From Guillardia theta CCMP2712 (Eukaryota; Protista; Cryptophyta), in the NCBI RefSeq assembly GCF_000315625.1, contig NW_005434663.1:587882-651881 (forward strand): a stretch of DNA of 64,000 nt, given 5' to 3'. Below the pieces are notes generated by a model. The model made no database searches. It had not been told where the DNA came from and saw nothing but the letters and a program-made list of their open reading frames with translations. Shown one piece after another: positions 16,516-33,194 of the stretch (position 1 is the first letter of the stretch; the number at the start of each line of letters is the position of its first letter). Position numbers and translations under genes: made by a program.

Positions 16516-19500
16516 TCAAGGAATGTTGTCTCCTGCATGTCGTTAAGACCAGAAACTCCTGCTGAGAGAGGAAGTGGAAGTTACCGATGAGTGCCAGGTT
16601 GATAGAAGTGAGTTTGTTGTCGATGATACGAACTTGAGTTGAATCGTCTCCCTTTCCCGCAAGTTCCAACCCGAACCTGTAGGAGTTGCATTACCGCACA
16701 ACACATGGTGGTGGAGTTGACAGGGGTGGGAGAGGAACGAGGAGGAGGTGGGAGAGGGAGGAGGAGAAGGGAAGGAGGGTGAGCAGAGGATGGACGGATG
16801 GAAAGAGGAAGGGAGGGAGGAAGGACCAAAGGAGGAGGGAAGGAGGAGGAGGGATGGGTAATGTGACGGAAGGGGAGGGGAGGAAGGGAAGGAGAACAGA
16901 GAGCATGAGGACGAGACCTCCACTCTCTGCCCTTGAGCTCTGGGAGCTTGTAAGGAGGGAGGTACGTCTCCTTGTTGAGGACAACAGTCATCATCCTTTG
17001 AGTCGGCAACCTGCGATTGAAGCTCAGCGGGACGGGCTGAAGAGCCAACGAAGGAGGAGGAAGCAGAGACGGGAGCAGGGGGATTGGGGAAGAGCGGGAG
17101 GAGCAGAAGGTCAGGACGAGGAGTGGAGGAGTTGGACGGGAGAGGAGCGAGGTAGGAGGAGGAGACTCTTGGTGGTGGTGTTGGGGACGCCGGGAGGATG
17201 CTGGGTCGTCTTACAGGAAGACGCCGACGGTGTCGGGGTATGCCTTCACCTTCACCTTTCCGCTCGCTCCCTTCCAGTCGGCACAGTCCTGCTCCTTGTT
17301 CCTGATTGACATGTTGTTGACGCTGTAGAGGAACCCGTGCTCAGTATCAGAGAGTTCCTTGGACGACTGCGGGAAGTTGCCCCCGTCGAAGAGGAAGACG
17401 CCGATGCGAATGTCCGACTTGACCTTGGCGCAGTTGATCTCGAGGAAGGAGACCTCCTCCTTGGACGCGCTGGGAGAGATGAGGACGGACCCATCGAGCT
17501 GCGTCAGCTCCACCGTCCTCCCGTCTCCTCGGATCTGCATCCCTTCCTTCCTGTAGGCCTTGTCGAACGTCCAGCTGACCTGCTTGATGGGAACCTTGTT
17601 CTCCTCCTCCTCCTGCACCCCCCTGTCCTCGTCGGGGATCGCACGGAAGCTCATTCGCATCCTCGACATCTCGTCCCTCAGCCGATGGATCTCCTCAAGC
17701 TCCTGGTCATGCTTCAGCGCCGCCGGCGCGTACATGCGCATCACGCCGGTGACGAGGAGCTTGGAGCGGATGAGGAGGAGGCCCTCCCTGCCCTGCCTGC
17801 TCGAGGGCCGCAGGAACATCTGCAGGACGTCGACGAGCTGCTCGATGCGGGTCTCGACGTTGACATCGGCGATGGAGTCCTTGAAGAAGAGCTCGTCGGA
17901 GGAGGAGATGAACTTGAGGTCGTTGATGGAGATGCCCCCCGAGGACGAGAGGATCTGCAGCATGACGAACTTGACCACCTTGCGGTCGAAGCGCTGCTCC
18001 ATGTTCGGGAGGATGCAGTCAGTCCAGAGGTCGTCCACTTTCCCGCTCATCGCCCTCAGGTCCTCGTCCACCTTCTCGTACAGCGACAGCTGAGACGCCT
18101 GTGCGCAGAAGAGGGCGAGGAAGAGAGGGCTCCTCCCGTCCTCCTTGCTCACGATCAGCTTCACTTGGGCCGGGCTCACGTTCTCCTTGCCGAAATGCCG
18201 CAGCCATGCTCGGCACACCTTGTCACTCTCCTCCCCATTGTCGAGCAGCGGCAGGCTGATCTCAGGGATTTGAGCCTTGGATACATCGCTCGCAGCGATG
18301 AGGATGAGCTTGCCCTCGGGCCCTCTCCCACCTCCCTCCTGCTCCTCCTCCTGCTCCCTCTTGCTGGTAGACGCCAGCTCGAAGAACTGGCAGAGGAGCT
18401 CCACCTGCGCTGAACCGAGCCCGTCGACGACGAGGAGGAGGGTGTACCCGCTGCGGAGGACGTCGATGAGGACAGTCTTGAACCACTTGAACGTCGTCTG
18501 CGCCGCCTCCTTCCTCTTCAACGCTTCCCTCCCTTGGAGCTGGATAAGGATCTCCATGCCGAGGTAGCGCAGGACGTGCTCGAAGGAGGTGTCGGTCATC
18601 TTGAAGTAGAAGGTTACAAGATTGACGCTGCGGGCACCGGTGGGGGAGGAGGGGGAGAGGAAGTCAGAGGGAGCACTAGAGGTGCCAAGAATGTTGAGCC
18701 TCTTCTGCAGGAAGTTGCAGAGGAAGGACGTTCGCCCCGAGTGCGCGTCCCCTCTGAGGAAGAGAACGTCGGCCGTGGTGGAGGAGGAGAGGGCGCCGGA
18801 GAGCCAGTCGGAGACGCCCTGCATGACTCGCTCCCTGGACCCTCCCTTTGGCATCTCGAAGACGATGGTCATGTCCTCCAGGAACGCCTCCTGCTCCTTG
18901 TGCTCCTTGAAGTGGTTGTCGAAGGGGAAGGAGAGCGGGGGAGGGAAGTATGCTTCAAGCATGTCCTGCAGCCCGATCATGACTGCCCAGCCGAGGTTCT
19001 TGAGGTCGAGCCGGACGCCGCTGGCGGAGACGTTGGCGTGTTTCATCTAGGGAGCGAATTGAGAGAATTGAAGACAAAGGGGGGGGGGGGGCGGGNNNNN
19101 NNNNNNNNNNNNNNNNNNNNNNNNNNNNNNNNNNNNNNNNNNNNNNNNNNNNNNNNNNNNNNNNNNNNNNNNNNNNNNNNNNNNNNNNNNNNNNNGAAGG
19201 AGGGGGTAAATAAATTATAAAAGGGAAATTGATGTACGAGAGACACAGGGGCCTCCAAGAAGAGGGAGGGAGAGAGCCACCGGCACATGGAGGGGGAGAG
19301 GGAGGGAGGGGAGGCAGAAGGGGAAGCGAGCAGGGCAGGCACGACAAGTCTCTCCTTACCTTGTCTCCCTTGGCCTCCTCGTCAAACCTCTTTAGCTCCT
19401 CGTCCTCCACAAGTTCCTGCAGGTTCCTGGGGGGGGGGGGGGAGAACATTCCTCCAGCTTTACCTCGAGCCTCCTCAAGATCTGTTCCTGATTGATGTTG

Positions 19501-22500
19501 CCGTCTGTTCTCTCCTCCATGATGATGTCCTGCCCAGCTCGTAACTACTCTTGCTCCTCCTCTACCCCATGCTCCTCCTCTACCCCATGCTCCACCCCCC
19601 CTCCCTCTCGCCCCCCATGCCATGTCCTTCACACGTAGTACCCGATTCGGCCGACTGTATTGCTCCACGAGCAGCCTCCACCACCTGAGCAGCATCAGGA
19701 GGTAGGAAGGGAGAGTCGTTGGGTCTTCACTTCAGAATCTCCTCCTTTTGCCTCTCCACCTCCTCCGCCGCGCATTCCTTGAGCTTGTTGCGCAAGGAAT
19801 CGATCATGGAGACGATGGAGAAGGTTCTGAACTCATAGGGAGGATCGATGAGATCTGGGCTGTACGTGTAGCACCGTCCTGCTGCGATCTGATACAGACC
19901 GTCAACTCCTGCTCCAGCAAGGCCCCACTTCTCCCCCCCTCCCCACCCACTGCTCCTCACTACTTCTCCTCTGTTTTCTTCATCAGCCGCCTCCTCGTTC
20001 TCTCGCGGCTCGCTCCGCCTCCTTCGCCTTCCCTCCTCCTCCCGTCTCTCGTCTTCCCACCTGCTTCACGTCTTCCTTCAAGTGGTTGACGTTGAACTCT
20101 CCCTCCTTCACGTTGTCGAAGAACGCTTCTGACGCCGACTGCGGCACGTTCTCCTTCCACTCTATCCTCGACGTGAACTCAGGGTCCCGGAGAAAGAAGA
20201 AAGTCTCTGAAGCGAATCTGAGGAAGGCTACTTAGAAGGTGCCACTTCTACTGCCCATTCCTCTGCTTCTTCCTCCCCTCCCCTCCTCCTCTGCCCCCCT
20301 CCCCTACTCTCCCTTCCTCTCCTCCTCCTCACGGTCGTCTGAAGAACGCATGCGCCATCTCAAGTCCGGTCACAGAGTACTGCAGCAGGGGTGAGCGGAC
20401 CTCCCAGCTGGGGCTCTAGACGAACCTGTTGGTACTTCCCATCCATCGTCCATTTGTAGGACTTGCCTGCACACCGAGCATCACAACAGAAGACTTCCTC
20501 CCTGTCCTCCTCTTCTCCTCCTGCTTCCTCCTCCCTGTCCTCCTCTCCTCCTGCTTCCTCCTTGTCCTCCTCCTTCCCCTCGTATTCGTCCTTCCTCGTC
20601 GTCCTCGTCCTCGCCTCTGAACCTTTGCCTTCCTGTTTCTTCCTCCTGCATCCTCCTCCTGTTTCTGCCTCGTTCCTCATCATCTTCCTCCTCCCTCCGT
20701 CCCCTCTGCCTCATCATGCCTGCAACTGTGCGATCTTTCCCCTTGGGAGGAGGATTCCATCCACATCTTTCTCCAAGGAGACCGACGACCTGTCAGGGGT
20801 ACATGAGAAGAGTGTGAGGGAGGAGGAGGAGGTCAAGAAGGAAGGGGGGGTAGTAGGGGGGTTAGAAGGAGGAGGAGAGGATGAGGAGGAGGAGGAGTAG
20901 AGGAGGTGAGAGAAGGGGGGGGTTNNNNNNNNNNNNNNNNNNNNNNNNNNNNNNNNNNNNNNNNNNNNNNNNNNNNNNNNNNNNNNNNNNNNNNNNNNNN
21001 NNNNNNNNNNNNNNNNNNNNNNNNGCTAAGGGAGGAAAACATCAAGATGATCAGGAGCATCATCCCGTGGAGGTGGTGGTGGAGGAGGAGGAGGAGGAGG
21101 AGGAGGAATGCCAGTATGAAGCAGTAGATGAGGAGAATACTTACAAGAGGTACTTGCACCCCGTTGTGTAGTGGTAGAGTACACTCGTCAATCTTCTTGA
21201 GACAGGACAAAATTGTCTTGTTTTCTCTGATGACAGAAGTCAACATGAGGGGAAGGAGGAGGAGAAAAGGAGGAGAAAAGTAGGAGAGGCGGAAAAGGAG
21301 AGGAGAGAAGGAGGAGGGGGAGAAGGGAGGAGAGGGAGGAGGAGAGGGAGGAGGAGGATAGAGGAGTAAAGAGGGAGGCTGAGAGAGGGAGGAGGGGGAG
21401 GAGAGGGAGGGGAGGGAGGGGAGGGAGGGGAGTCAAGAGGAATAAGGGGATGGAGAGGCGGGCGAGGAGGAAGGCTTCACTTGGAATCGTCTTCCGTCAC
21501 CCCTCCCCATCTGAAGTCAATCCAAGAGAAATCGATGCGGCGCCGCGAGCAGGCCTCTCGGAACGCCGGGTAGATGAAGTTGTTGAGGTAGTCCCGCTCG
21601 CAATGCATGTCAGAGAATGTTGACGAGTTGAACACCTGAAAGGAATGTCACCTCGTCTCCCTCAGCTCCTCGACGTCAAATGTTCATCATCATCATCATC
21701 ATCATCTCGTCATCATCATCATCATCGTCATCGTCATCGTCATCGTCATCTACTTCACCTTGATCTGAACTCGCTCCCCGGGTAGGAATGGCTGGAGGAA
21801 GCTTCGCACCAGGGACGCAGACATGAGGACTTGAGAGAGTTGGGGGCACTTGCTTGAGTCCATGAGCTTTTTACTTCGAGCAGTGTGAGCAGCGATCAGA
21901 GCAGGGAAGGGAGGAGAAGCAGAAGGGGAGGGGAAGGGAAGGGTAGGCAAGGGGAGGGGAAGGGCAGGGCAGGGCAGGGCAGGGCAGGGAAGGGAAGGAG
22001 GAGGGAGGCAGGGAGGGAGAGGTCGCACGTGATAGTGTCTTGCAACGTAGTGATGATGGTCTCGTCGATGAAAAGTTCAAGGATGGCGTATGTGCGTCGG
22101 TGGTTGAGTTTGGTGAGGACGACTTGTTTGGAGTCCAGGTTGAGAGCTCTCGCGACCTCTTCGAAGATGCGCTGCTTGAACTCTTCTTCTGATTGCTGTT
22201 GGTAGCAAGACAAGGTTGCATTGTAAGAGTCAAAGTGACAAAAATGCCGATGGGTTGAGAGATTGAGCGTACCAGGCTGTTCTTCATGCTGCAAACCATC
22301 GCAACGACCAAGAAGGTGCTCATGTCCTGGATCACTTTTGAACGGCTCTGCCAGACCCGAATGTCAACGTTGTTCATCATCATCATCATCATCACCATCA
22401 CCATCACCACAACCACCACCATGAACATGACTACCATCATAAGCAGCAGGAGGAAGAATGTTTTGATCATCATCATCGTCATCATATCATCATATGAAAT

Positions 22501-25500
22501 CATTTTCTCCTCTCCCTTCCTCCTACCCTTCCTTTTCCTCTGGCCTCCACTCCTCCTCCTCCTCCTCCTGCTCTTTGAGGGTGTACCAGGTACGGAAGCA
22601 GGCCTTGTTTCCTCTCTTGCAACCTCTTGCAGATCTCCTCGGCCACCAGCCGCAAGTTGATCATCTTCTTCTCTCCCGTCTCCATCCTCCTCACGCGTTC
22701 CATCAGCGACAGCGACAGCTCGACTCGAGCGAAAATCTTCTTCTGCAAGCAAAATTTCACAAGAAAGCCGCGCGCTCAAGGTCAAGATCCGAACATGGTC
22801 AACAGACTTCATCGACGCCTCGTGGATGGGGTTGACGACGCCTTGCGCGACAAGGTCGACCGCCTCTAGCTGAACGACTCTGATGATGACGGACTCTCTG
22901 GAGATAGCGACCTCTTGCTCCCTTCCCACCTCCTCGCACATGTCCATCATCGTCTTGGTGGTCTCCTCCACAAGCTGCTGCGGCCCTTTGCTCTCAGCCT
23001 CGTCGAAGACCGCCAGGTCGAACTCGAGGAACACGTGGGTCTTGTCGATGGCGTCTTGTTTCATGACCCCCATCTGCAGCAATGAGGCAATCTCTGCTAC
23101 CTGTCAACCATCGCAGTCAAGACGATTGTCTTCTTCACCACGGGTCATCCTCCTCCTCCTCCTCCTCCTCCTCCTCCTCCTATCCTCCTCCTCCTCCTAT
23201 CCTCCTCCTCGTTTTCGTCCTCCTCCTCCTCCTCCTCCTCTCCAGCAGCAAGGCACTCTACTTTCCTTCCTCTCACCTGCTTCGACTTCAAGGCATGGAT
23301 CGACTGCGCCCTCGAGATCGTCGACGACACTCTGTCGAACTCATCCACGTTCTTCATCCTCGGCTCCACCAGCATCCTCTTCATCTCCTTGAGCTTCTGC
23401 GCGCTGTCTACGTCCCTATCTACCCTCCTCATCCTCGACAGAAGCTTCTTCAGCGGCAGCCTCTCCCCCTCCCCACTCTCCAGCTTCTCCACGTCGCACT
23501 TGTCCATCATCTCCAGCCTCAGGATGCAGTCGTACACCCGCACGAGGGAGAACTCCTCCCCGCTCTTGTCCGCACACGCCGCACACTCTCCCCTCATCTC
23601 CTCCATCATCTCCGTCGCCCTCCGCTCTATCACATCCAGCTGCGCCTGCGGCAGCTTCTGCGCTATCAGCTGACAGATGCTCACTTGGCCGACCCTCAGG
23701 TCCGCCCGGTGCGTCGTTGCCATCTCCTGCAGGAGGGAGCAAAGCTTGTACAGCTCCTGGGGCACCTGCGATCTTCCCAGCTGGAGGATGGAGGACAGAA
23801 ACTCGTCACAGAACGAGTCCACCCCCATGTGGTCCAGCAGCCGGTGCAGGACGACCGGGTTGTTGAACAGCTCGAGCATCTTCTCGAAGTTCTTCATCTT
23901 CAGCTGGCGGACCGCCAGGTCCACCAGGTGCTTGTCCGGCACGTTGAAGTAAACCTTGAAGGTGTCGTGCTGCAGCGACTGCTCGAGTGCCTTGTTCGCC
24001 GACATGTTCGCCGTGCTCAGCTCGTTCTCCAGCATCAGGTTGTCCCTCGTCTTGAGAGCCTTCAGTCGTCATCCCGTCAGTCGCTTGCAAGGCAGGAGGA
24101 ACAGCAACGACACGTCAAGGCAGGGGAGCAAGGGCAGGGAGCAAGAGCAAGGGCAAGCATCAGTCTCCATCATCGTCAACTGGCACGAGATCGGATCATG
24201 CGAGCAGAAAATACCTTGATGAACTTGTAGATGCTCTCCCTCGCCCTCTTCCTAATGTTCTGACTCGTCATCTTCGTCTCCAGCTTCACACGCTCGAACT
24301 CCGACACGAAACCATCGCGGACAAGAGCGAGTTGAAGCAAAAGAGCCTTCGAACACGTTACCTCTTGTCTGTTTCCTCCTCATCTCCTCCACTTTCTCTT
24401 GAGGGCCATCCTTAATCGCTCAAACCCACTCCCGCACCTCCTTTCCTCCCCCTCCCCACTCTCCTGTCCTGTCCTCTTACCGCGTTCTCTTCCAAGTTTA
24501 GAATCGTCACTCCCTTTGCTGTTCCGCGGTACAACTCCTCATACTCCGACATGCGTTTCCACGATGACGATTGCCGCATGCTTTTGATCGCTTTGCCCCT
24601 TGCAGTGAGCAGGAACTCCTCCTTTCCCTGCAGGAGAAGATGAGAGGAGGGAAGGAGTAGACGGGGAGGGATGAAGGGAGGTAGTCGAGAAATCCGGTTC
24701 GAACATGGTCACCTTGAAAGTGTCTTGCTCTTCTCCATCGATTCTCTTCTCCCATCTCAAGATGACGACATTCTGCTTGACTTCCTTGCTCAAGAACTGC
24801 AGCAAGATCAGCATCGTGTCATGCAGGAGGACCGAGAGGAGAGCGCGAGGGTCTGGGGAGTAGCAGAGGAAACGGGGGCGTAGGTAGGAGGGGAGGTCGG
24901 TAGTGCAAGATCGCAGCAGAGGAGAGAGAAGGGCGGACGAGAACAGTAAGAGGACACGGGGACGTGAAGGGGCTGGGAAGGCACCTGCGGTTTGGGGGGC
25001 TTGGGACGGGAGGTTGTGATTACGGTCCTCCAGCAAGAGACTGAGAGAAGGCGGATGAGATGGAAGGCTCAGCAACAGCGTCGTCGTTACCGATCGTCTC
25101 TCCTCGCTCGTCGCTCAGGACCGCTCTCAGCTTACATACACAAGTTGTTGAGGACAGGACGGGCTGAGACAAGGTGTAAGGGTTGACCGGGGCGTGCTGG
25201 GAGGTGGGAGCTTACTATAGCGATGTTGAAGGTACTCCTGTCTCGACGATCCGTCGTCTCTATCTGATCAAGATTGTCATTCACACGCACACGGATGTTT
25301 GTCAGATGTGCATCGTTGGCACTTAACCCCTTATCTCCTGCCTCCTCCTCCTCCTCACCAGCCATGGCAACAAGACGCAACGGCAGCCTCTGCAGCATGC
25401 TCCCGCCTTACCTTCTCACGGCGACGGACTACCTTCTCAGTCATCTCTGCAGATTCCAACTCGAGGCAATGCACATCTTTTGCCACCGCCTCCTCGAGCA

Positions 25501-28500
25501 CGCAGGTGAGGAAGACGTCGCAGCACGTCACTCGCTCAACAGAAAAGCTTGGCAGGAATGCCTTCATCCACTGTCAGCCTTTCCCCCCCCAGGTCCTCCA
25601 ACATCCCTCACCCGCCGGTTCGACGGCTCCTGCTGCTTCCCGCTAGCACGGTGACCTCCGTCCTCGCCTGAGTCCCCAAGGAGCATGTCGAGCCCCTGGA
25701 AGCTCAGTCACGCTCCCCTCATGGTCTTCTCCTCTTACTGGAGCGCAGATGTCCGTCAACCACAGGGAAGAGGAGGAGTCTTCGTGCCACAGGGACTTGT
25801 TGAGCGTGTGAACGTGCACCATGGTTCTGACTCTGCGGCAAACGGGAGGTCAGGAAGAGAGCAGAAAAGAGGAGGAGAAGAGAGGAGGAGAAGAGAGGAG
25901 AGGAAAGGACGAGAGAAGAAGAGGAGCAGACTTGTTCAGCACGTGACGGTTCTTGATTCCATGCAGCATCGCCTCCCCTTCGTCGAGGAAGGAGTCGTTG
26001 ACGTCGAACACAAAGGGGAAGAGGAGGGGCCTCAGCAACTCCAGACATGCTCTGACCTTCTTGCTGACCGACGGCTCGGCAGCAGACCATCTGAAGGAGC
26101 GGAAGACATCAGCTGGACTCTTGCCGAGCGAGAGCTGGTGCAAGACGTCAAAGGTGACGTGCTCCCCGAATCTGTCAGCAGAGAGGTTGATAACGTAGTC
26201 GACGACTCCCTCCAGGTCAGAGGGAAAGTCGTCGGGCACAGAAAGTTTCGAGTCTTGAAAGAGCACGAACAGAGTCGTCTTGAGGTAGAGAGGTGAGAAA
26301 TACTGAAGAGAAAACAACTCAGCGTCTTCGGAAGAGTCCTCCCCGCACACACCATCTCTTGATTGTTTGCAATCTTGGACAAGGAGCTCATAGCACTCCG
26401 CAAGGACGGAGGAATGCTCCCCTGCACCAACAAAACCATCCAAGTCAGACGAAGATGTAATCTTCCAGGTGTTCTCGGGCTGAGCAAGAGCAAGAAACAA
26501 CAACGCAACACAGCTCGTCTACATCGCATGTCTAGGACATCAACATCATCTCCCATCTGCTCACGTCCGGAAGGGCTTCGGCGACGTTTGCACGCAGCAT
26601 GTGCAGCCTCTCCTTCACGCTGAGCTTGTCCATCCTCGTCACCGACAGTTCGATCCCCTCGCATGTAGCAGTTAGCTCCTGTTACACCATCACGAGTCAC
26701 TTCTCCCTCCTCTCATCTCCACCAGCCCTACATGGAAGCTCAGGATTGGCCCCGATGTCACGATGCAAGAGCCTGGGAGCAGGGAGCAGACCAGGCGGAG
26801 CTTCTCGACTTGCGAGCCCACTGAGCTGCCCAGTCGGTTCGAGGGGCCCAGCAGGGCTGAGACGTCGGTGCTGCCGAGCGACTCTATCATGACAAGCAGT
26901 CGCGGCAGCGGCTGACTCGCCGTCCCTCCGAGCAGCACCTGCTGCAGGTCCTGATAAAGTACCTTGTCCTTCCCCCTCACGTCCAGAATCCACTTCCAGT
27001 GAGGAGGGACTTGCTGATAGGATTCCTTGAAGAAGGCGAACAAGCGCTGCGCAAGCTCCTCCTCCTGCTCCTCAAGTATTCCCGTCTCTTGCACCCCGTT
27101 TGACGTTTTCTGAACCCCGACGGCCTCCAACCCAGCAGCACCCTCCTCCGCGCTCGCCTTCTCCCTCACAATCTGCATTTCGTCGTCAGATCGGTCAGCG
27201 TCACTTCTTGCAACTCACCCGCACCAACTCATCCAATCTCCTAATCATCTCGTCCGTCCTTGCGCCATCGTTGCACACAAGGCAACACGCGTCGAAGAGC
27301 ACATAGTCGATCACCTGGACCAGGTCTAGCCCAGGTCGTCTGAACGCAAAGATTGTGTGTACGGGCTTCTGGCCGTGATCTGATCTGAGGATATTCCTCA
27401 CCACACTAGAGACTACTGAAGTCTTTCCCTCTCCCCCTTCACCCTCCAGGTAGAAGATCATCAGTTGACTGTCGCTGGACTGCTCCAGGACTTGGCTCAA
27501 CATGAGCTTCATGGTTTCATCTTGGATGAGGCCCTTCATAAGGCTGCACGAATGCAGGAGCTTGTCGAGGATGACCTGTTGCCTCTGCAGCTCCTGCACG
27601 TGCTGCTCGTGCCGGTTGTCCCTCCTCGAAATCTCCTGTAACACCCCGCCGCCCAAGCTCCCCGACATCGTCGACCCGCTGTGGTTGGGGGAGGAGGAGT
27701 ACAGGATGTGCTTGTCAAGTATGGCATCACCGTCACACCCCAGCTTCTCTGCAAGCCACCTGACCAGCTCGCCCAGCATGCCCCCAGCACTGACGCGGTG
27801 AGAGAAGAGAAAGCAGCTCCTCTGCAGCAACCCCAGGAGGGCCTCCACCTCCTTCCCCGAGAACCGCTGCGACAGCTCATCCTGCATGCGGGGGGTGAGG
27901 GAGGACGAGAACCAGACCTCGACCCCGTCCCTCATCACCTTGACCTCCTCCTCACTCTTGTACTTGAGGGAGAATGCCCCCCCTGCCCTCATCGCCCTCA
28001 TCACCTGCTCCCCCTGCGCGAACGGAACCCACAAGTCCAGCGTGACTGCCATGTCCTCAGCTGTTTGCTCAATCAGGTCCTGGAACCCCCTGGAGTCGAC
28101 AAACTGCAGCACCCTCCGCTCCCCTCCCTTCCTCTCCCCCCTCCTCGCACCCGCTCGTGAGGCCTCTGGCCTCGGGTGCGAGCTATACCCCGATCGCTCG
28201 CTCTGCCTGCTCATTGCATGTACAATCCGAGCTCCCATACTCTTATGATCGATTTCCGCCATCCTTCCTACGTCCTCCACAAATTCACGAAGGAGCGATT
28301 GAAAGCCCATGGCGCAAGACAACGTTTTCGTCTCCACACGAAGCGTAACGAAGCCTCCATCTTCTCCCTTCGCCCCATACTCGAGCATGTTCACGACTCG
28401 TGACAGCAGGCCCTCAGCCCTCGCTCGCTGACCTTCGCTCAGACAGTTGACCAAACCCGAAGTTTGCGCGCGATCGATCTTCTTTTTCACCTTCAAGAGA

Positions 28501-30096
28501 GTCTCCACCTCCTCCAGACTCACGCTCGCCTCCCCCAGCAGACTGATGAGCTCCGGTCGCTCGCCGTCCACCAAAGTGCGCGTGTTCTTGCTCAGGGAGA
28601 GGTCCGAGCAGGGTTGCTTCAGCTCTTCAATCAGCCTCCTTGCGATCGACAGGCAGTCGCTCGCGTTGGAGGGGGAAGGAGGCCCAGCCTTAGGAGACAC
28701 GCGAGCATCGGGCTTGATAATCACAATCAGGCACAAGGTCAAGTGATCGTCGATAGGATGACTCTCCACTCTGAGGACGAGACGATCAGCAGAGACGAAC
28801 AAGTGGCAAGCAAACTCTTGTCTGATCTGAGCGAGAAGCAGCTCGGGGTTTGAGATCGAGTCATCACAGTCTTGCTTCATGGGGATCAAAACCTTCTTCG
28901 CCTGATTGTCTTGTACCCTGTAGGATTCCAACCAGAGGAGATGGCTATTGACGAACCCATCGAATTCTGTGACTAACGAATCAACTGTGATCGAAAACTG
29001 TGATGTCTTGCATGCTAGCAGAAATTTCTTCGCGGCTGAGCCTTCAAAGCTTCTCCCATTCTTCACTAGGTGTTGTCGGAGCAGAGACAGGTAATTTCTC
29101 CGCGACAGCGCATTGTTCGCATCGTCAGATCGCAGATGGAAGGGCTCATCTCGTACAATGCGGTCAAGAGCCTCCTCGAAACACTGAAAATCCTGCAAGA
29201 TAGACCCGAGGCAGCGCTGGCTCAGCCTTCGCTGCAGGAAGAGCAAGTCCGACAGAACACGGCTGGCAGTAGCTATGAGCCGACCATCGATCAGCGTGAC
29301 GATCACATGGTTGAGATCTTGCATAGACGCAGTTGTCCAGCTCCCGTCCAGCCCTCTGCAGTCAGCATAGAAGCTTTGAGCGCATCTCGCCAGTTGCTCT
29401 CGATGACTAGAAGCTAACAAGTTCTTGACTTGAGTGCAGAGCTTACTTCTTGCCGGCAACCTCAGGCTGTCAAGGGACGGAGGCCTCGCACGGCTCGCCC
29501 ATGGTCTGTTCTGCTCTGTCTTTGGTCGCTTGCGAGGAGCCGTCAACGGCCTCTTTGGAATGCTTTCGGGGTTCATGTCCGGTGTAGGGGACTTCGACTC
29601 ATCCCGGGAACGGGCGATGGGCTCTGCCGACCTGGGTCTTGTGACAATCCCCACGGGCCTGTCGGCCTGCATGTCGACGTTGAAGGGATCAGATGAAGCC
29701 GCTTCATCCTGAGATCAGATCAGAATGTCACGTGGCCGTTTACAAGGATGCTTAAGCACGGCTAGTTTCACCCCTGGGTAATTTCAGGATGAATATGCAT
29801 ATGTGCTGGGAAAATATTGCGAGCAATGCATCGAGTGTGAACAGCTTCATACACCAATCAAGAACACCTCTTCCACACTCTTATCACGGGCATTCGAAAC
29901 ATGGTACCTTCCACGATCGTTCGCGTGGTGTTGGGCAGAAGTCAAGTGACCACAGCGCCAAGGAGCTCAATGGACACAGGGAGGGAGGAGGACATGGAGG
30001 TATTCCACTTTGCTATCCTTACAAGGAACACGGAGAGGGAGAGGAGAAGGATGCGGCCGCCTCCCTTACCTGCTCCAGCGGTATGACAAAGACCAT
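16516..30096 (-). CDS. Giant multi-exon STAND-like protein: NACHT-like NTPase 1 - linker - DUF4062 - NACHT-like NTPase 2 - SPRY
   Basis: The ORFs 27201-29672, 26690-27178, 25850-26503, 24539-25400, 23145-24035, 21871-23082 and 17211-19046 are co-oriented, and most junctions can be joined by GT-AG introns. P-loops: FYLEGEGGEGKTS (~27412-27456) and LFLRGDAHSGRTS (~18721-18768). Walker B: LLLVVDGL. GxP-like motifs: SPLYL and SPLFL. DUF4062: VFNSSTFSDMHCERDYL..WIDFRWG..SCLKKIDEC..VGLLGERCGW. SPRY: WTFD..EINCAK..IRIGV..GFLYS..DTVGVFL. The start is uncertain (29672-30096) and two gaps fall inside. Confidence 0.75.
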
Positions 30097-31528: not shown

Positions 31529-33194
31529 CTATACAGCTGTAGATGCAACTAGTCTCCTGTCTGTGCACGGAAGCACGCATACATCTTGCCCTGCACTCGA
31601 TGTTAGCAACTTCATACAACAAATACATTAAAGTTCATCACCTTCTTTCAAGTCCATTACGTCAATATTCTTATTGACATTCATCAGTTTCTTGACCGTC
31701 GTCTGAAATCGAGCTGCAGAACATCTTCAATACCGAATCATTCAGTCGATCTCAGAGAGTATGTGACCTGCGATCACTACAAGCGTGTCTCCCCTCCGAA
31801 CCTTGTAAATTGAGCCGATCCTAAGCACCACGTCGGAATGCAGCACAGCATTCGGCTGAGGTAGCCAAGGATTCAGATTCCACATCCTGCGCCAATTTCG
31901 ATCCAGATGATACCTGCAGATGCTCAGAACATTTGTTTGCGTGCTCAACAACTTACTGGCGTGCAAGCGATTCTAGAGTCATCCCCTTGTTGATGTAGAT
32001 GGAACAAATCGAAACTGTTATTGACACGCAGGTGACAGCTCCTGGCCCAAGATAACCACTATCCGTGCAGCCGTAGCATAGCCTGATAATCTTTCCATCA
32101 TCCAATGCCGCTTGAGCCTGGTACGTCAACGTGGTTTCCACAGACTTCGTTGTGGTTCCGACGTTCACCACTGCATCCACCGTCAAGCAGTCGCTCAAAC
32201 CACACACATATTGCTGCTCGACTTTTTTGTCAAAGATAGTTGCATTGACAATGTAGACAAGAGGTGTCAAACTTGACTGCGAAGAAGCGTTGATGCTGCA
32301 TGTCATGGTGTGTCCTAACAAGGCCTGTCCTGGAGCAAGGTACACCATGTCGGAAGCAGGTGGGATATACCGCCACATCGGGTTTGTACTTGAGACAGTG
32401 AAGGTAAGTGTATAAGTGTGGACCGGACAAATGTTGATGGCACCCGGCGTTCCGATGACAAACTCCCCCACATGTTGCGCTCCCTGCAGCCCCCGAGTCG
32501 GCATCCACTGGACTTCCCAAGTCTGCGGTGTTGTGCTAGAGACAGTCATCCCGATGGGGACACCAGGATCGACCGTCGCCTGAAATGTCAACGATGTTGA
32601 GAGGGGGAGATTGATTTGAAATTGGATCAATTCGTTGACACTGACACTGTTAACATAAGTGCACTGGGTTTTTCCATCGGCTGTCGTGCAAGAGAATTCC
32701 TTGATATTTGAAAATGGATTCTGTAAATTGGACAGAGAAGAACACTGCACGAATTTGATGCCTAGGTTGTTGCATTCAGGTATCGTGCATGCGGGAGGCT
32801 GAGCTTGATCTTGACTCGAGAACTGGGCAGTTTTCGCACAGGTGGGGACTGTGATGGCGGAAGTTCCTTTCTTGATGTCGGTGACAGAAGCTGCAGGATT
32901 CAAATATGTGCCAATATAAAGAGTTCCAAACATGGGCTCAGCTCTGTACATGTTTGAAATGGTTAAATCGCAGCCATTGGCAGAAGCATCGAGAGCGTCC
33001 GCCGCCTGGAAACCTTGGAGTGCAAAGATGAACAAGAACAGCAAGAAGATGGATGAACTGGGGAAGATGTGTGTAGCGAGGGATGGAGGGTATGATGAGG
33101 AAAGAAGAGAGATTCCTAAGTGAGCGGAGGAGCATCTTGCTGCTTTACGGCGCCGCGGTTTCATATCACGCGGCGCCATAGTGCCAAGAGCCAT
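31529..33194 (-). CDS. Secreted Cys-rich protein with two C-terminal LysM domains
   Basis: Hydrophobic segment IFLLFLFIFALQGFQAADA. Spliced end: CSIYINKGMTLESLARQ|YHLDRNWRRMWNLNP..IYKVRRGDTLVVIA|ARFQTTVKKLMNVN..DLKEG|QDVCVLPC..*, which matches the LysM consensus YxVxxGDTLxxIAxxF...L..G..l.lP. Confidence 0.85.

Follow-up and report, generated by a model that had tools for sequence, protein, structure and literature searches.

A probable single gene of Guillardia theta encoding two STAND modules around a TIR-like DUF4062 domain

The window analysed here is a stretch of 64,000 nucleotides from the cryptophyte Guillardia theta CCMP2712 (C11:587882-651881 of an 87.1-Mb assembly of 669 contigs, which the genome-wide scans reported below also cover). 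Its minus strand carries many stop-free frames between about 30.1 and 16.5 kb, the largest of which are 29714-27204 (837 codons) and 19046-17214 (611 codons). These frames probably belong to one nuclear, intron-rich gene of a Guillardia-type cryptophyte, estimated at about 3,000 codons or more. From the N-terminus to the C-terminus, the predicted protein contains a region of about 700 amino acids (aa) with no assigned fold, a first STAND module (cassette 1), an fn3-like domain, a helical region, a DUF4062 domain, a linker, a second STAND module (cassette 2) and a probable SPRY domain. The parts and their order, the fold of the second module, the homology of the two modules and the conservation of the layout in relatives can be regarded as demonstrated. 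The protein is a variant of the TEP1/NWD1-type STAND proteins, the nearest family, in which one STAND module is combined with WD40 or TPR repeats.

Architecture of the gene and of its relatives

The gene model was built by comparison with relatives from environmental assemblies, whose contigs contain long uninterrupted open reading frames (ORFs). The protein P0009 (853 aa, locus L015) includes the pre-DUF4062 region, the DUF4062 domain, the linker and the start of cassette 2. In the locus L016, an uninterrupted ORF of 1,185 aa joins the end of cassette 1 to the fn3 and DUF4062 domains; a single short intron-like shift separates it from P0005 (linker and cassette 2), which lies downstream on the same strand, ahead of an ORF with a SPRY-like end and a stop, the protein ending just after this domain. 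A search with the L016 ORF also revealed P0040 (1,390 aa) and P0041 (1,337 aa, locus L020). Each of them carries a P-loop-like cassette (GAGCST, the Walker B motif VLDGLHG, TPEYL and a winged-helix-like part), an fn3 domain and a DUF4062 domain in a single ORF. The upstream ORF of L020 is homologous to residues 149-216 of the 837-codon frame of the window (phmmer E 1.8e-12), and its downstream ORF carries cassette 2. Exon by exon, the window frames provided 12 anchors, whose order and strand agree with those in these relatives (Table 1; the E-values of the anchors were computed against a small set of window frames). A tblastx comparison of the relatives' contigs gave too noisy a signal.

A first-pass annotation of this DNA had described at least seven ORFs spliced into one gene of about 13.5 kb. 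The single-gene layout is backed by the colinear relatives, whereas the exon number, estimated at about 20, is far above seven. The gene ends proposed at 30096 and 16516 are both compatible with canonical splice sites. The annotation had also proposed two tandem STAND modules around a DUF4062 domain and a SPRY end, and the same architecture recurs in three environmental relatives. The order, the homology of the cassettes and the fold of cassette 2 were supported; whereas the SPRY domain stayed below the detection thresholds. The fn3 domain and the N-terminal region of about 700 aa are additions to that architecture.

The P-loop/Walker B/SPL(Y/F)L cassettes were both read in the sequence on the minus strand where they had been annotated. 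The motifs of cassette 2 are GDAHSGRT (18752-18729), LLLVVDGLG as Walker B (18440-18414) and SPLFL (18131-18117); the annotated replacement of the Walker A lysine by arginine was confirmed. The AlphaFold2 (AF2) model of the cassette 2 exon, obtained with an 18-row alignment, had a mean predicted local distance difference test score (pLDDT) of 72.6 and a predicted template modelling score of 0.66, and residues 40-465 were mostly at 80-95. The best Foldseek match of this model was the NB-ARC of NRC1 (E 1.2e-8), followed by Cdc6/ORC, Apaf-1 and CED-4. VIA-align, which covered model residues 46-453, also placed NRC1 first (Z 21.1, 319/342 residues, root mean square deviation 4.3), before the resting state of NRC2 (Z 20.1), Apaf-1 (Z 18.6), MalT (16.9) and NLRC4 (14.0). 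As modelled, cassette 2 is a complete STAND module composed of nucleotide-binding, helical (HD1) and winged-helix domains. The SPLFL motif, in our reading of the model, occupies the place of the GLPL motif of NB-ARC proteins.

With the 611-codon frame as query, an exhaustive HMMER search returned 15 proteins at E <=0.001, of which seven reached E <=1e-10. Among them are a protein of the cryptophyte Baffinella frigidus, which is the nearest named relative, several environmental proteins, one protein with the order DUF4062-NACHT-HTH_NWD1-TPR, and a TEP1-like one that has TROVE and WD40 domains. Because such proteins are among its relatives, cassette 2 is placed in the TEP1/NWD1/NPHP3 branch of the STAND NTPases. 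The NACHT profile PF05729 (cut-off 26.7 bits) matched no ORF of the window at E <=0.1; among the relatives, it gave 20.9 bits in P0001 and 27.8 bits in the distant relative P0011. Only noise was obtained when the two big ORFs were compared with the PDB sequences by phmmer. Word-index protein searches with the 611-aa and 837-aa ORFs returned no match, self included, which may reflect no more than the length window of these searches or the records available to them, and PADLOC and NCBIfam gave no meaningful match. The Baffinella frigidus protein P0001 (locus L019, MU646590.1:355441-390352) is modelled over 14.9 kb for 559 aa and crosses several assembly gaps, and it looks like a fragment of a much larger gene. 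The P0001 locus, which is rich in gaps, matched cassette 2 only.

The motifs of cassette 1 are GEGGEGKT (27443-27420), which agrees with the Walker A pattern GxxxxGK[ST] and has an intact lysine, LLVMIESLG as Walker B (26898-26872) and SPLYL (26296-26282). This cassette is spread over at least four exons, with introns of 46 (or 109), 53 and 85 nt. Since the window copy is split, the profile and fold tests were performed with the unsplit version of the relatives. Comparison of their cassette 1 with the cassette 2 family by hhalign gave a probability of 96.9% (E 1.9e-10, 246 columns), and the P-loop, Walker B, sensor strand, GxP-type motif and winged helix were all aligned in register. In the ESM Atlas, residues 60-480 of P0040 fell with the NPHP3_N, nSTAND and NACHT clusters at 0.93-0.96, with 167-182 shared features; the 837-codon frame of the window reached NPHP3_N and the same STAND families at 0.87. 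The secondary structure predicted for a relative's cassette 1 also alternates strands and helices as in the P-loop fold. These results indicate homology between the two cassettes. When the hhalign alignments were left untrimmed, the shared DUF4062 domain was the sole match. A duplication of the whole unit (DUF4062 plus STAND twice) was also considered, and the search for a degenerate DUF4062 domain upstream of cassette 1 was negative (E 0.58).

The DUF4062 domain was annotated as complete and ahead of the second cassette, and it is indeed complete, although its sequence is divided among at least four short exons (Table 1). Its first exon matched the crystal sequence of the TIR-like domain of human TEP1 (PDB 11gz, chain 11gz_A) with E 1.1e-8, and P0009 matched it with E 4.9e-12. 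The Pfam profile PF13271 (cut-off 24.7 bits) gave 17.1 bits for the window exon and 19.2-23.3 bits for the unsplit relatives, none of which reach the cut-off; the signal in the window is below threshold because the domain is split over short exons. When the whole genome was scanned with Pfam for DUF4062 and SPRY, the loci found lay elsewhere in the genome and none in the window, again owing to the shortness of the exons. A preprint of 2026 reports DUF4062 as a TIR-like NADase family that functions in the defence of bacteria and in the vault protein TEP1, whose DUF4062 domain has NADase activity; E1008 of TEP1 is catalytic, and R908 and R976 contribute (bioRxiv 10.64898/2026.05.01.722283). The same report gives experimental backing to the TIR-like fold that had been annotated for the domain. 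The TEP1 residue numbers were mapped by alignment from the chain 894-1113, in which E1008 is the second Glu of SVTEME. In the window, the equivalent Glu is kept (SVTGLE), and the equivalent of R976 is kept in GERCGW; the equivalent of R954 is probably Lys. The domain may be a NADase here as well.

Six further DUF4062 loci lie above the Pfam cut-off in this genome (C11:477271, C87:185607, C49:304089, C35:156520, C160:79242 and C1:1005000), in open frames of 784-4,061 codons, the longest being that on C1. One of them is located just 110 kb from the gene, on the same contig.

The fn3 domain was recognized through a relative. The profile PF00041 (cut-off 25 bits) was passed in P0040 with 27.7 bits; Pfam did not detect fn3 in the window.

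Alternative explanations

Several results weigh against the model, and they are given here together with the alternatives on which they bear. The C-terminus is the first of them. The SPRY profile PF00622 (cut-off 26.3 bits) gave 21 bits (E 3.7e-4) for the C-terminus of the relative P0002, which is below threshold, and Pfam found no SPRY match on the C-terminus of the window. SPRYD3 was the sole match of a profile search of the PDB with the C-terminus, at E 1.5. Comparison by hhalign with four SPRY domains of this genome gave the expected register, with E 0.005 and a probability of 6.7%, and the AF2 model of the SPRY-like part had a pLDDT <50. The annotated C-terminal SPRY domain thus shows a weak family resemblance; whereas none of the SPRY tests reaches its threshold. 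The 170-190 residues at the C-terminus of the family are likely to be a SPRY domain.

The nucleotide-binding sites are also not well preserved. The Walker A lysine was lost from cassette 1 in both relatives that cover it (P0040 and P0041, the sole ones, with GAGCST and Cys in place of the lysine). It is also gone from cassette 2 in every member read, where it is replaced by Arg in the window and the motif reads GPGQGCT in P0005 and EPCQGTS in L020. The family has thus not conserved the ability to hydrolyse nucleotides. Moreover, a sensor-1 Arg is not evident, and together with the lysine losses this means that the nucleotide switch may not operate. The losses in the relatives suggest that a scaffold, and not an NTPase, is the role of module 2 at least, which is most likely dead for hydrolysis. 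Among the four environmental P-loops read, three have Cys in place of the Walker A lysine (cassette 1 of P0040 and P0041, cassette 2 of P0005), and the fourth is that of L020 cassette 2 (loci L020 2688-6725, P0040 and L016 3530-5251). The recurring Cys may be meaningful beyond simple decay.

The locus could be a single gene that encodes no immune receptor but a structural or housekeeping scaffold, similar to NPHP3/NWD1 or to the vault-associated TEP1, whose modules would be pseudo-NTPases and whose TIR-like domain may be inactive. This is a real possibility, though a doubtful one. It would agree with the lost lysines of the relatives, and with a single-copy gene that has no close paralogues, unlike the expanded families of immune NLR (nucleotide-binding leucine-rich repeat) proteins. 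A search for paralogues in the same genome found one weak paralogue on C103 (NPHP3_N, 22 bits) and no close copies. The equivalent of TEP1 R908 is Ser in the alignment, and human NWD1, NWD2 and NPHP3 displayed no NADase activity in vitro (bioRxiv 10.64898/2026.05.01.722283). However, the catalytic Glu and the R976 equivalent are retained, the relatives diverge fast outside DUF4062 (25-40% identity), and recognition proteins typically carry binding domains of the SPRY and fn3 types; these counterpoints are not decisive.

Two genes on the same strand would be an improbable alternative. The upstream gene would encode the N-terminal region, cassette 1 and fn3; whereas the downstream gene would encode DUF4062, cassette 2 and SPRY as a normal TEP1/NWD1-type protein, and the single gene would be an artefact produced by joining their ORFs. 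Canonical DUF4062-NACHT proteins such as P0011 and P0008 do start near DUF4062, and the middle of the gene (about 25900-22500) has low-complexity runs and weak similarity to the relatives. However, the first DUF4062 exon opens directly at an acceptor and lacks an ATG of its own, and the exon before it, homologous to pre-DUF4062 residues of the relatives, ends in PGERVQIK at the donor GTGAAG, which matches PGER..MK-VFNSS of P0009. In three relatives, moreover, a single ORF without interruption spans the upstream part and DUF4062. Two places where the gene might be divided had been named in the first-pass annotation. Around the first of them, in the stretch 25900-24100, weak colinear matches to the fn3 region of the relatives were found. 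As for a split at an assembly gap, both gaps lie within canonical GT..AG introns. At gap 2, residues 429-433 of P0009 and those from 434 onward align to the flanking exons with nothing missing; at gap 1, P0005 and P0009 run through the junction without a large missing block. The ATG at 19046 is internal, because the acceptor CCCTAG directly precedes it. A tiny exon within a gap is conceivable, though nothing calls for one. Comparison with the relatives thus suggests one mRNA for the whole locus.

It is slightly less probable still that cassette 1 is not a genuine STAND NTPase and that its GKT and SPLYL motifs are chance matches in a helical region, which would leave a single STAND module. Among the ten longest frames of the window, Pfam gave weak P-loop signals alone (AAA_16 E 0.017, NPHP3_N E 0.07), and these are at the P-loop of cassette 1. 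A window exon of cassette 1 (exon 3) alone did not match the cassette 2 profile (A1) in hhalign, and the cassette 1 profile found nothing among the PDB sequences. The AF2 model of a relative's cassette 1 was unreliable (pLDDT 40.7 with a 7-row alignment). However, the hhalign alignment of the two cassettes with every motif in register, the ESM Atlas similarities to STAND families and the P-loop-like alternation of strands and helices, all described above, argue for two modules.

It is very unlikely that the locus is a pseudogene in decay or was wrongly assembled across its gaps: there are two N gaps, microsatellite runs and an in-frame TAA that ends the 611-codon frame inside the SPRY-like domain; however, this TAA is part of the donor CT/GTAAGA and the domain resumes in the next exons, all anchor exons are open, every junction examined is canonical GT..AG, and the exons on either side of each gap have the expected order and orientation and lack no residues.

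Coordinates and other observations at the locus

Table 1. Features of the probable gene and anchors to its relatives (window positions; HMM, hidden Markov model).
Feature	Position	Strand	Basis and remarks
Whole gene model	16516..30096	-	About 13.6 kb; 12 colinear anchors to L020, P0040, L016 and P0009, and canonical splice sites
Putative first coding exon	30070..30096	-	ATG and 8 codons; donor GTAAGG; in frame with acceptor CTCAG before 29708
Large exon: N-terminal region (~700 aa), strand 1 and P-loop of cassette 1	27219..29708	-	Donor GTGAGT
Walker B exon of cassette 1, with sensor-1-like strand	26732..27172	-	5' acceptor possibly 27109; match to relatives by eye
Small exon with the strand and helix that follow sensor 1 in cassette 1	26565..26678	-	Acceptor AACAG, donor GTGAGC; colinear, weak HMM E 0.33
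SPLYL (GxP-type motif) and winged-helix-like exon of cassette 1	25945..26479	-	3' end approximate; relatives' HMM E 3.9e-4, phmmer 6.2e-5
fn3-like exons	24179..24850	-	Approximate, intron-split; weak colinear matches to the relatives' fn3 region
Helical middle open frame	23148..24068	-	Relatives' HMM E 0.027, colinear; coding part stops before a Gly/Glu run
Open frame	21874..23103	-	Coding probably ~23103-22530; remainder ATG/GTG microsatellite and low complexity
Two exon pieces directly upstream of DUF4062	21759..22129	-	HMM E 0.043 and 0.021; tblastn with P0009
DUF4062 exon 1	21480..21635	-	Acceptor TTTCAG, then GTGTTC; relatives 73% identical, E 1e-31
DUF4062 exon 2 (KKIDEC)	21145..21213	-	Donor GTAAGT
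Assembly gap 2	20925..21024	.	Inside intron 21144-20790; donor GTAAGT 21144, acceptor GACAG before 20789
DUF4062 exon 3 (GERCGW)	20718..20789	-	Arg equivalent to TEP1 R976
DUF4062 exon 4 (SVTGLE)	20341..20409	-	Glu 20361-20359 aligns with human TEP1 E1008
Linker exons, DUF4062 to cassette 2	19360..20231	-	FFFLRD exon 20231-20115, then 19882-19733 and 19728-19360; donor GTAAGG at 19359
Assembly gap 1	19096..19195	.	Inside intron 19359-19047; donor GTAAGG 19359, acceptor CCCTAG before 19046
Large exon, 611 codons	17215..19046	-	Cassette 2 (fold ~18911-17688) and first two thirds of the SPRY-like domain (from ~17594)
Last three small exons	17010-16966, 16676-16585, 16532-16516	-	Complete the SPRY-like domain; stop TGA 16518-16516; splice sites and relatives' C-termini match by eye
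Anchor, N-terminal region and P-loop region	29714-27204	-	E 1.8e-12 (N-terminal region); E 0.011 (P-loop region, range 0.011-0.095)
Anchor, winged-helix part of cassette 1	26518-25853	-	E 3.9e-4 (phmmer 6.2e-5)
Anchor, helical middle region	24068-23148	-	E 0.027
Anchor, pre-DUF4062 region	22363-21899	-	E 0.043
Anchor, pre-DUF4062 region	22076-21753	-	E 0.021
Anchor, DUF4062 exon 1	21647-21480	-	E 1e-31
Anchor, DUF4062 exon 2	21213-21130	-	blastp 2.6e-6
Anchor, DUF4062 exon 3	20792-20484	-	E 7e-4
Anchor, linker	20231-19986	-	E 2.3e-7
Anchor, linker	20065-19730	-	E 0.012
Anchor, cassette 2	19046-17214	-	E 5e-25

The start at 30096 is plausible and remains putative; the alternative start is the ATG at 29672. 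The Walker B exon of cassette 1 had no significant match to the HMM of the relatives. The frame 23103-22530 resembles the N-terminus of P0009 by eye; its comparison with the same HMM was not significant, and it was not counted as an anchor. The linker exons matched P0009 and P0005 by blastp with E 2e-7 to 0.012.

Three candidate introns (27218-27173, 26731-26679 and 16584-16533) are very short, with 46-53 nt and canonical GT..AG ends, and lie next to introns of 85-360 nt within the gene. On the same strand, runs of GAT and ATG/GTG triplets at 21700-21679 and 22500-22370 would translate into strings of Asp, of Met or of Met/Val; those at 21700-21679 lie inside the intron 21758-21636, and those at 22500-22370, a stretch unmatched in the relatives, are probably intronic. 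A separate ATG-started frame of 413 codons (31953-33194, minus strand) is located just upstream of the gene. The C103 paralogue (L014 2450-7255) is a frame of 1,602 codons that begins with a weak F-box-like segment and has an NPHP3_N P-loop below the threshold; it may be an F-box-STAND protein.

Possible function and comparison with known systems

TIR NADases are well known to be activated by oligomerisation, and STAND modules act as switches for this process. In the mechanism proposed as the likeliest, a ligand would be bound by the C-terminal SPRY-like domain (or by fn3), and this binding would release the STAND modules to oligomerise. Their assembly would bring the TIR-like domains together and might thereby switch on the hydrolysis of NAD+ by DUF4062. 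Module 1 is possibly the only nucleotide-dependent switch in this alga. A dependence on concentration suggests oligomerisation-driven activation in TEP1 (bioRxiv 10.64898/2026.05.01.722283). The protein may have an immune role. For the family as a whole, it is a tentative and rather unlikely proposal that this would be a small group of double-STAND protist proteins with a competent DUF4062 NADase clamped between two homologous STAND modules that have largely lost the P-loop lysine, which would act as a nucleotide-independent scaffold, with recognition by SPRY and fn3.

TEP1, NWD1, NWD2 and NPHP3 have in common with the Guillardia protein a DUF4062 domain immediately before a STAND module whose helical/winged-helix part resembles that of Apaf-1, and the position of the catalytic Glu of TEP1 is kept. 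The Guillardia protein differs in having a second STAND module, fn3 and about 700 more residues upstream of DUF4062. Moreover, it has a SPRY-like end instead of WD40 or TPR repeats, and the Walker A Lys of the module adjacent to DUF4062 is Arg. Neither the exons nor the relatives showed a repeat domain (leucine-rich repeats (LRR), WD40 or TPR), the sensor that follows the STAND module in an NLR of the strict sense, and the protein is thus not an NLR in that sense.

Teleost NLR-B30.2 (NLR-C) proteins contain one NACHT, LRRs and a C-terminal PRY/SPRY (B30.2) domain that is thought to bind ligands; they are not known to have DUF4062. The order of a STAND NTPase and then a C-terminal PRY/SPRY domain is shared with them, although the SPRY domain here is sub-threshold. 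Tandem nucleotide-binding modules are also found in plant NLRs, including RPP2A (TIR-NB-TIR-NB-LRR), WTN1 of wheat (tandem NB-ARC) and Pib of rice (bioRxiv 10.1101/2023.04.25.538220, 10.1101/2024.08.30.610185). These proteins likewise have two STAND modules per polypeptide, and RPP2A has a TIR domain between them; whereas the Guillardia protein belongs to another STAND clade, has another TIR-like family and no LRR, and shows no detectable TIR-like domain before the first module. Since the lineage is unrelated to the plant NLRs, the origin was probably independent. A limited phrase search of the literature found no paper on two NACHT-type modules in one protein. The bacterial DUF4062 defence proteins Swarozyc and Evangelion share the TIR-like DUF4062 family, and the NADase of Swarozyc is reported to be switched on by assembly. 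Unlike the Guillardia protein, they are bacterial, have other auxiliary domains, and lack the STAND pair, fn3 and SPRY.

The control of a neighbouring DUF4062 domain by STAND modules in eukaryotes is the question that this family addresses. It provides a natural variant in which two STAND modules surround the NADase, and the P-loop is intact in one member and lost in others, which offers a direct test of the need for nucleotide binding in switching on the enzyme. The finding widens the NLR-like architectures beyond animals, plants and fungi, and tandem nucleotide-binding modules probably arose more than once.

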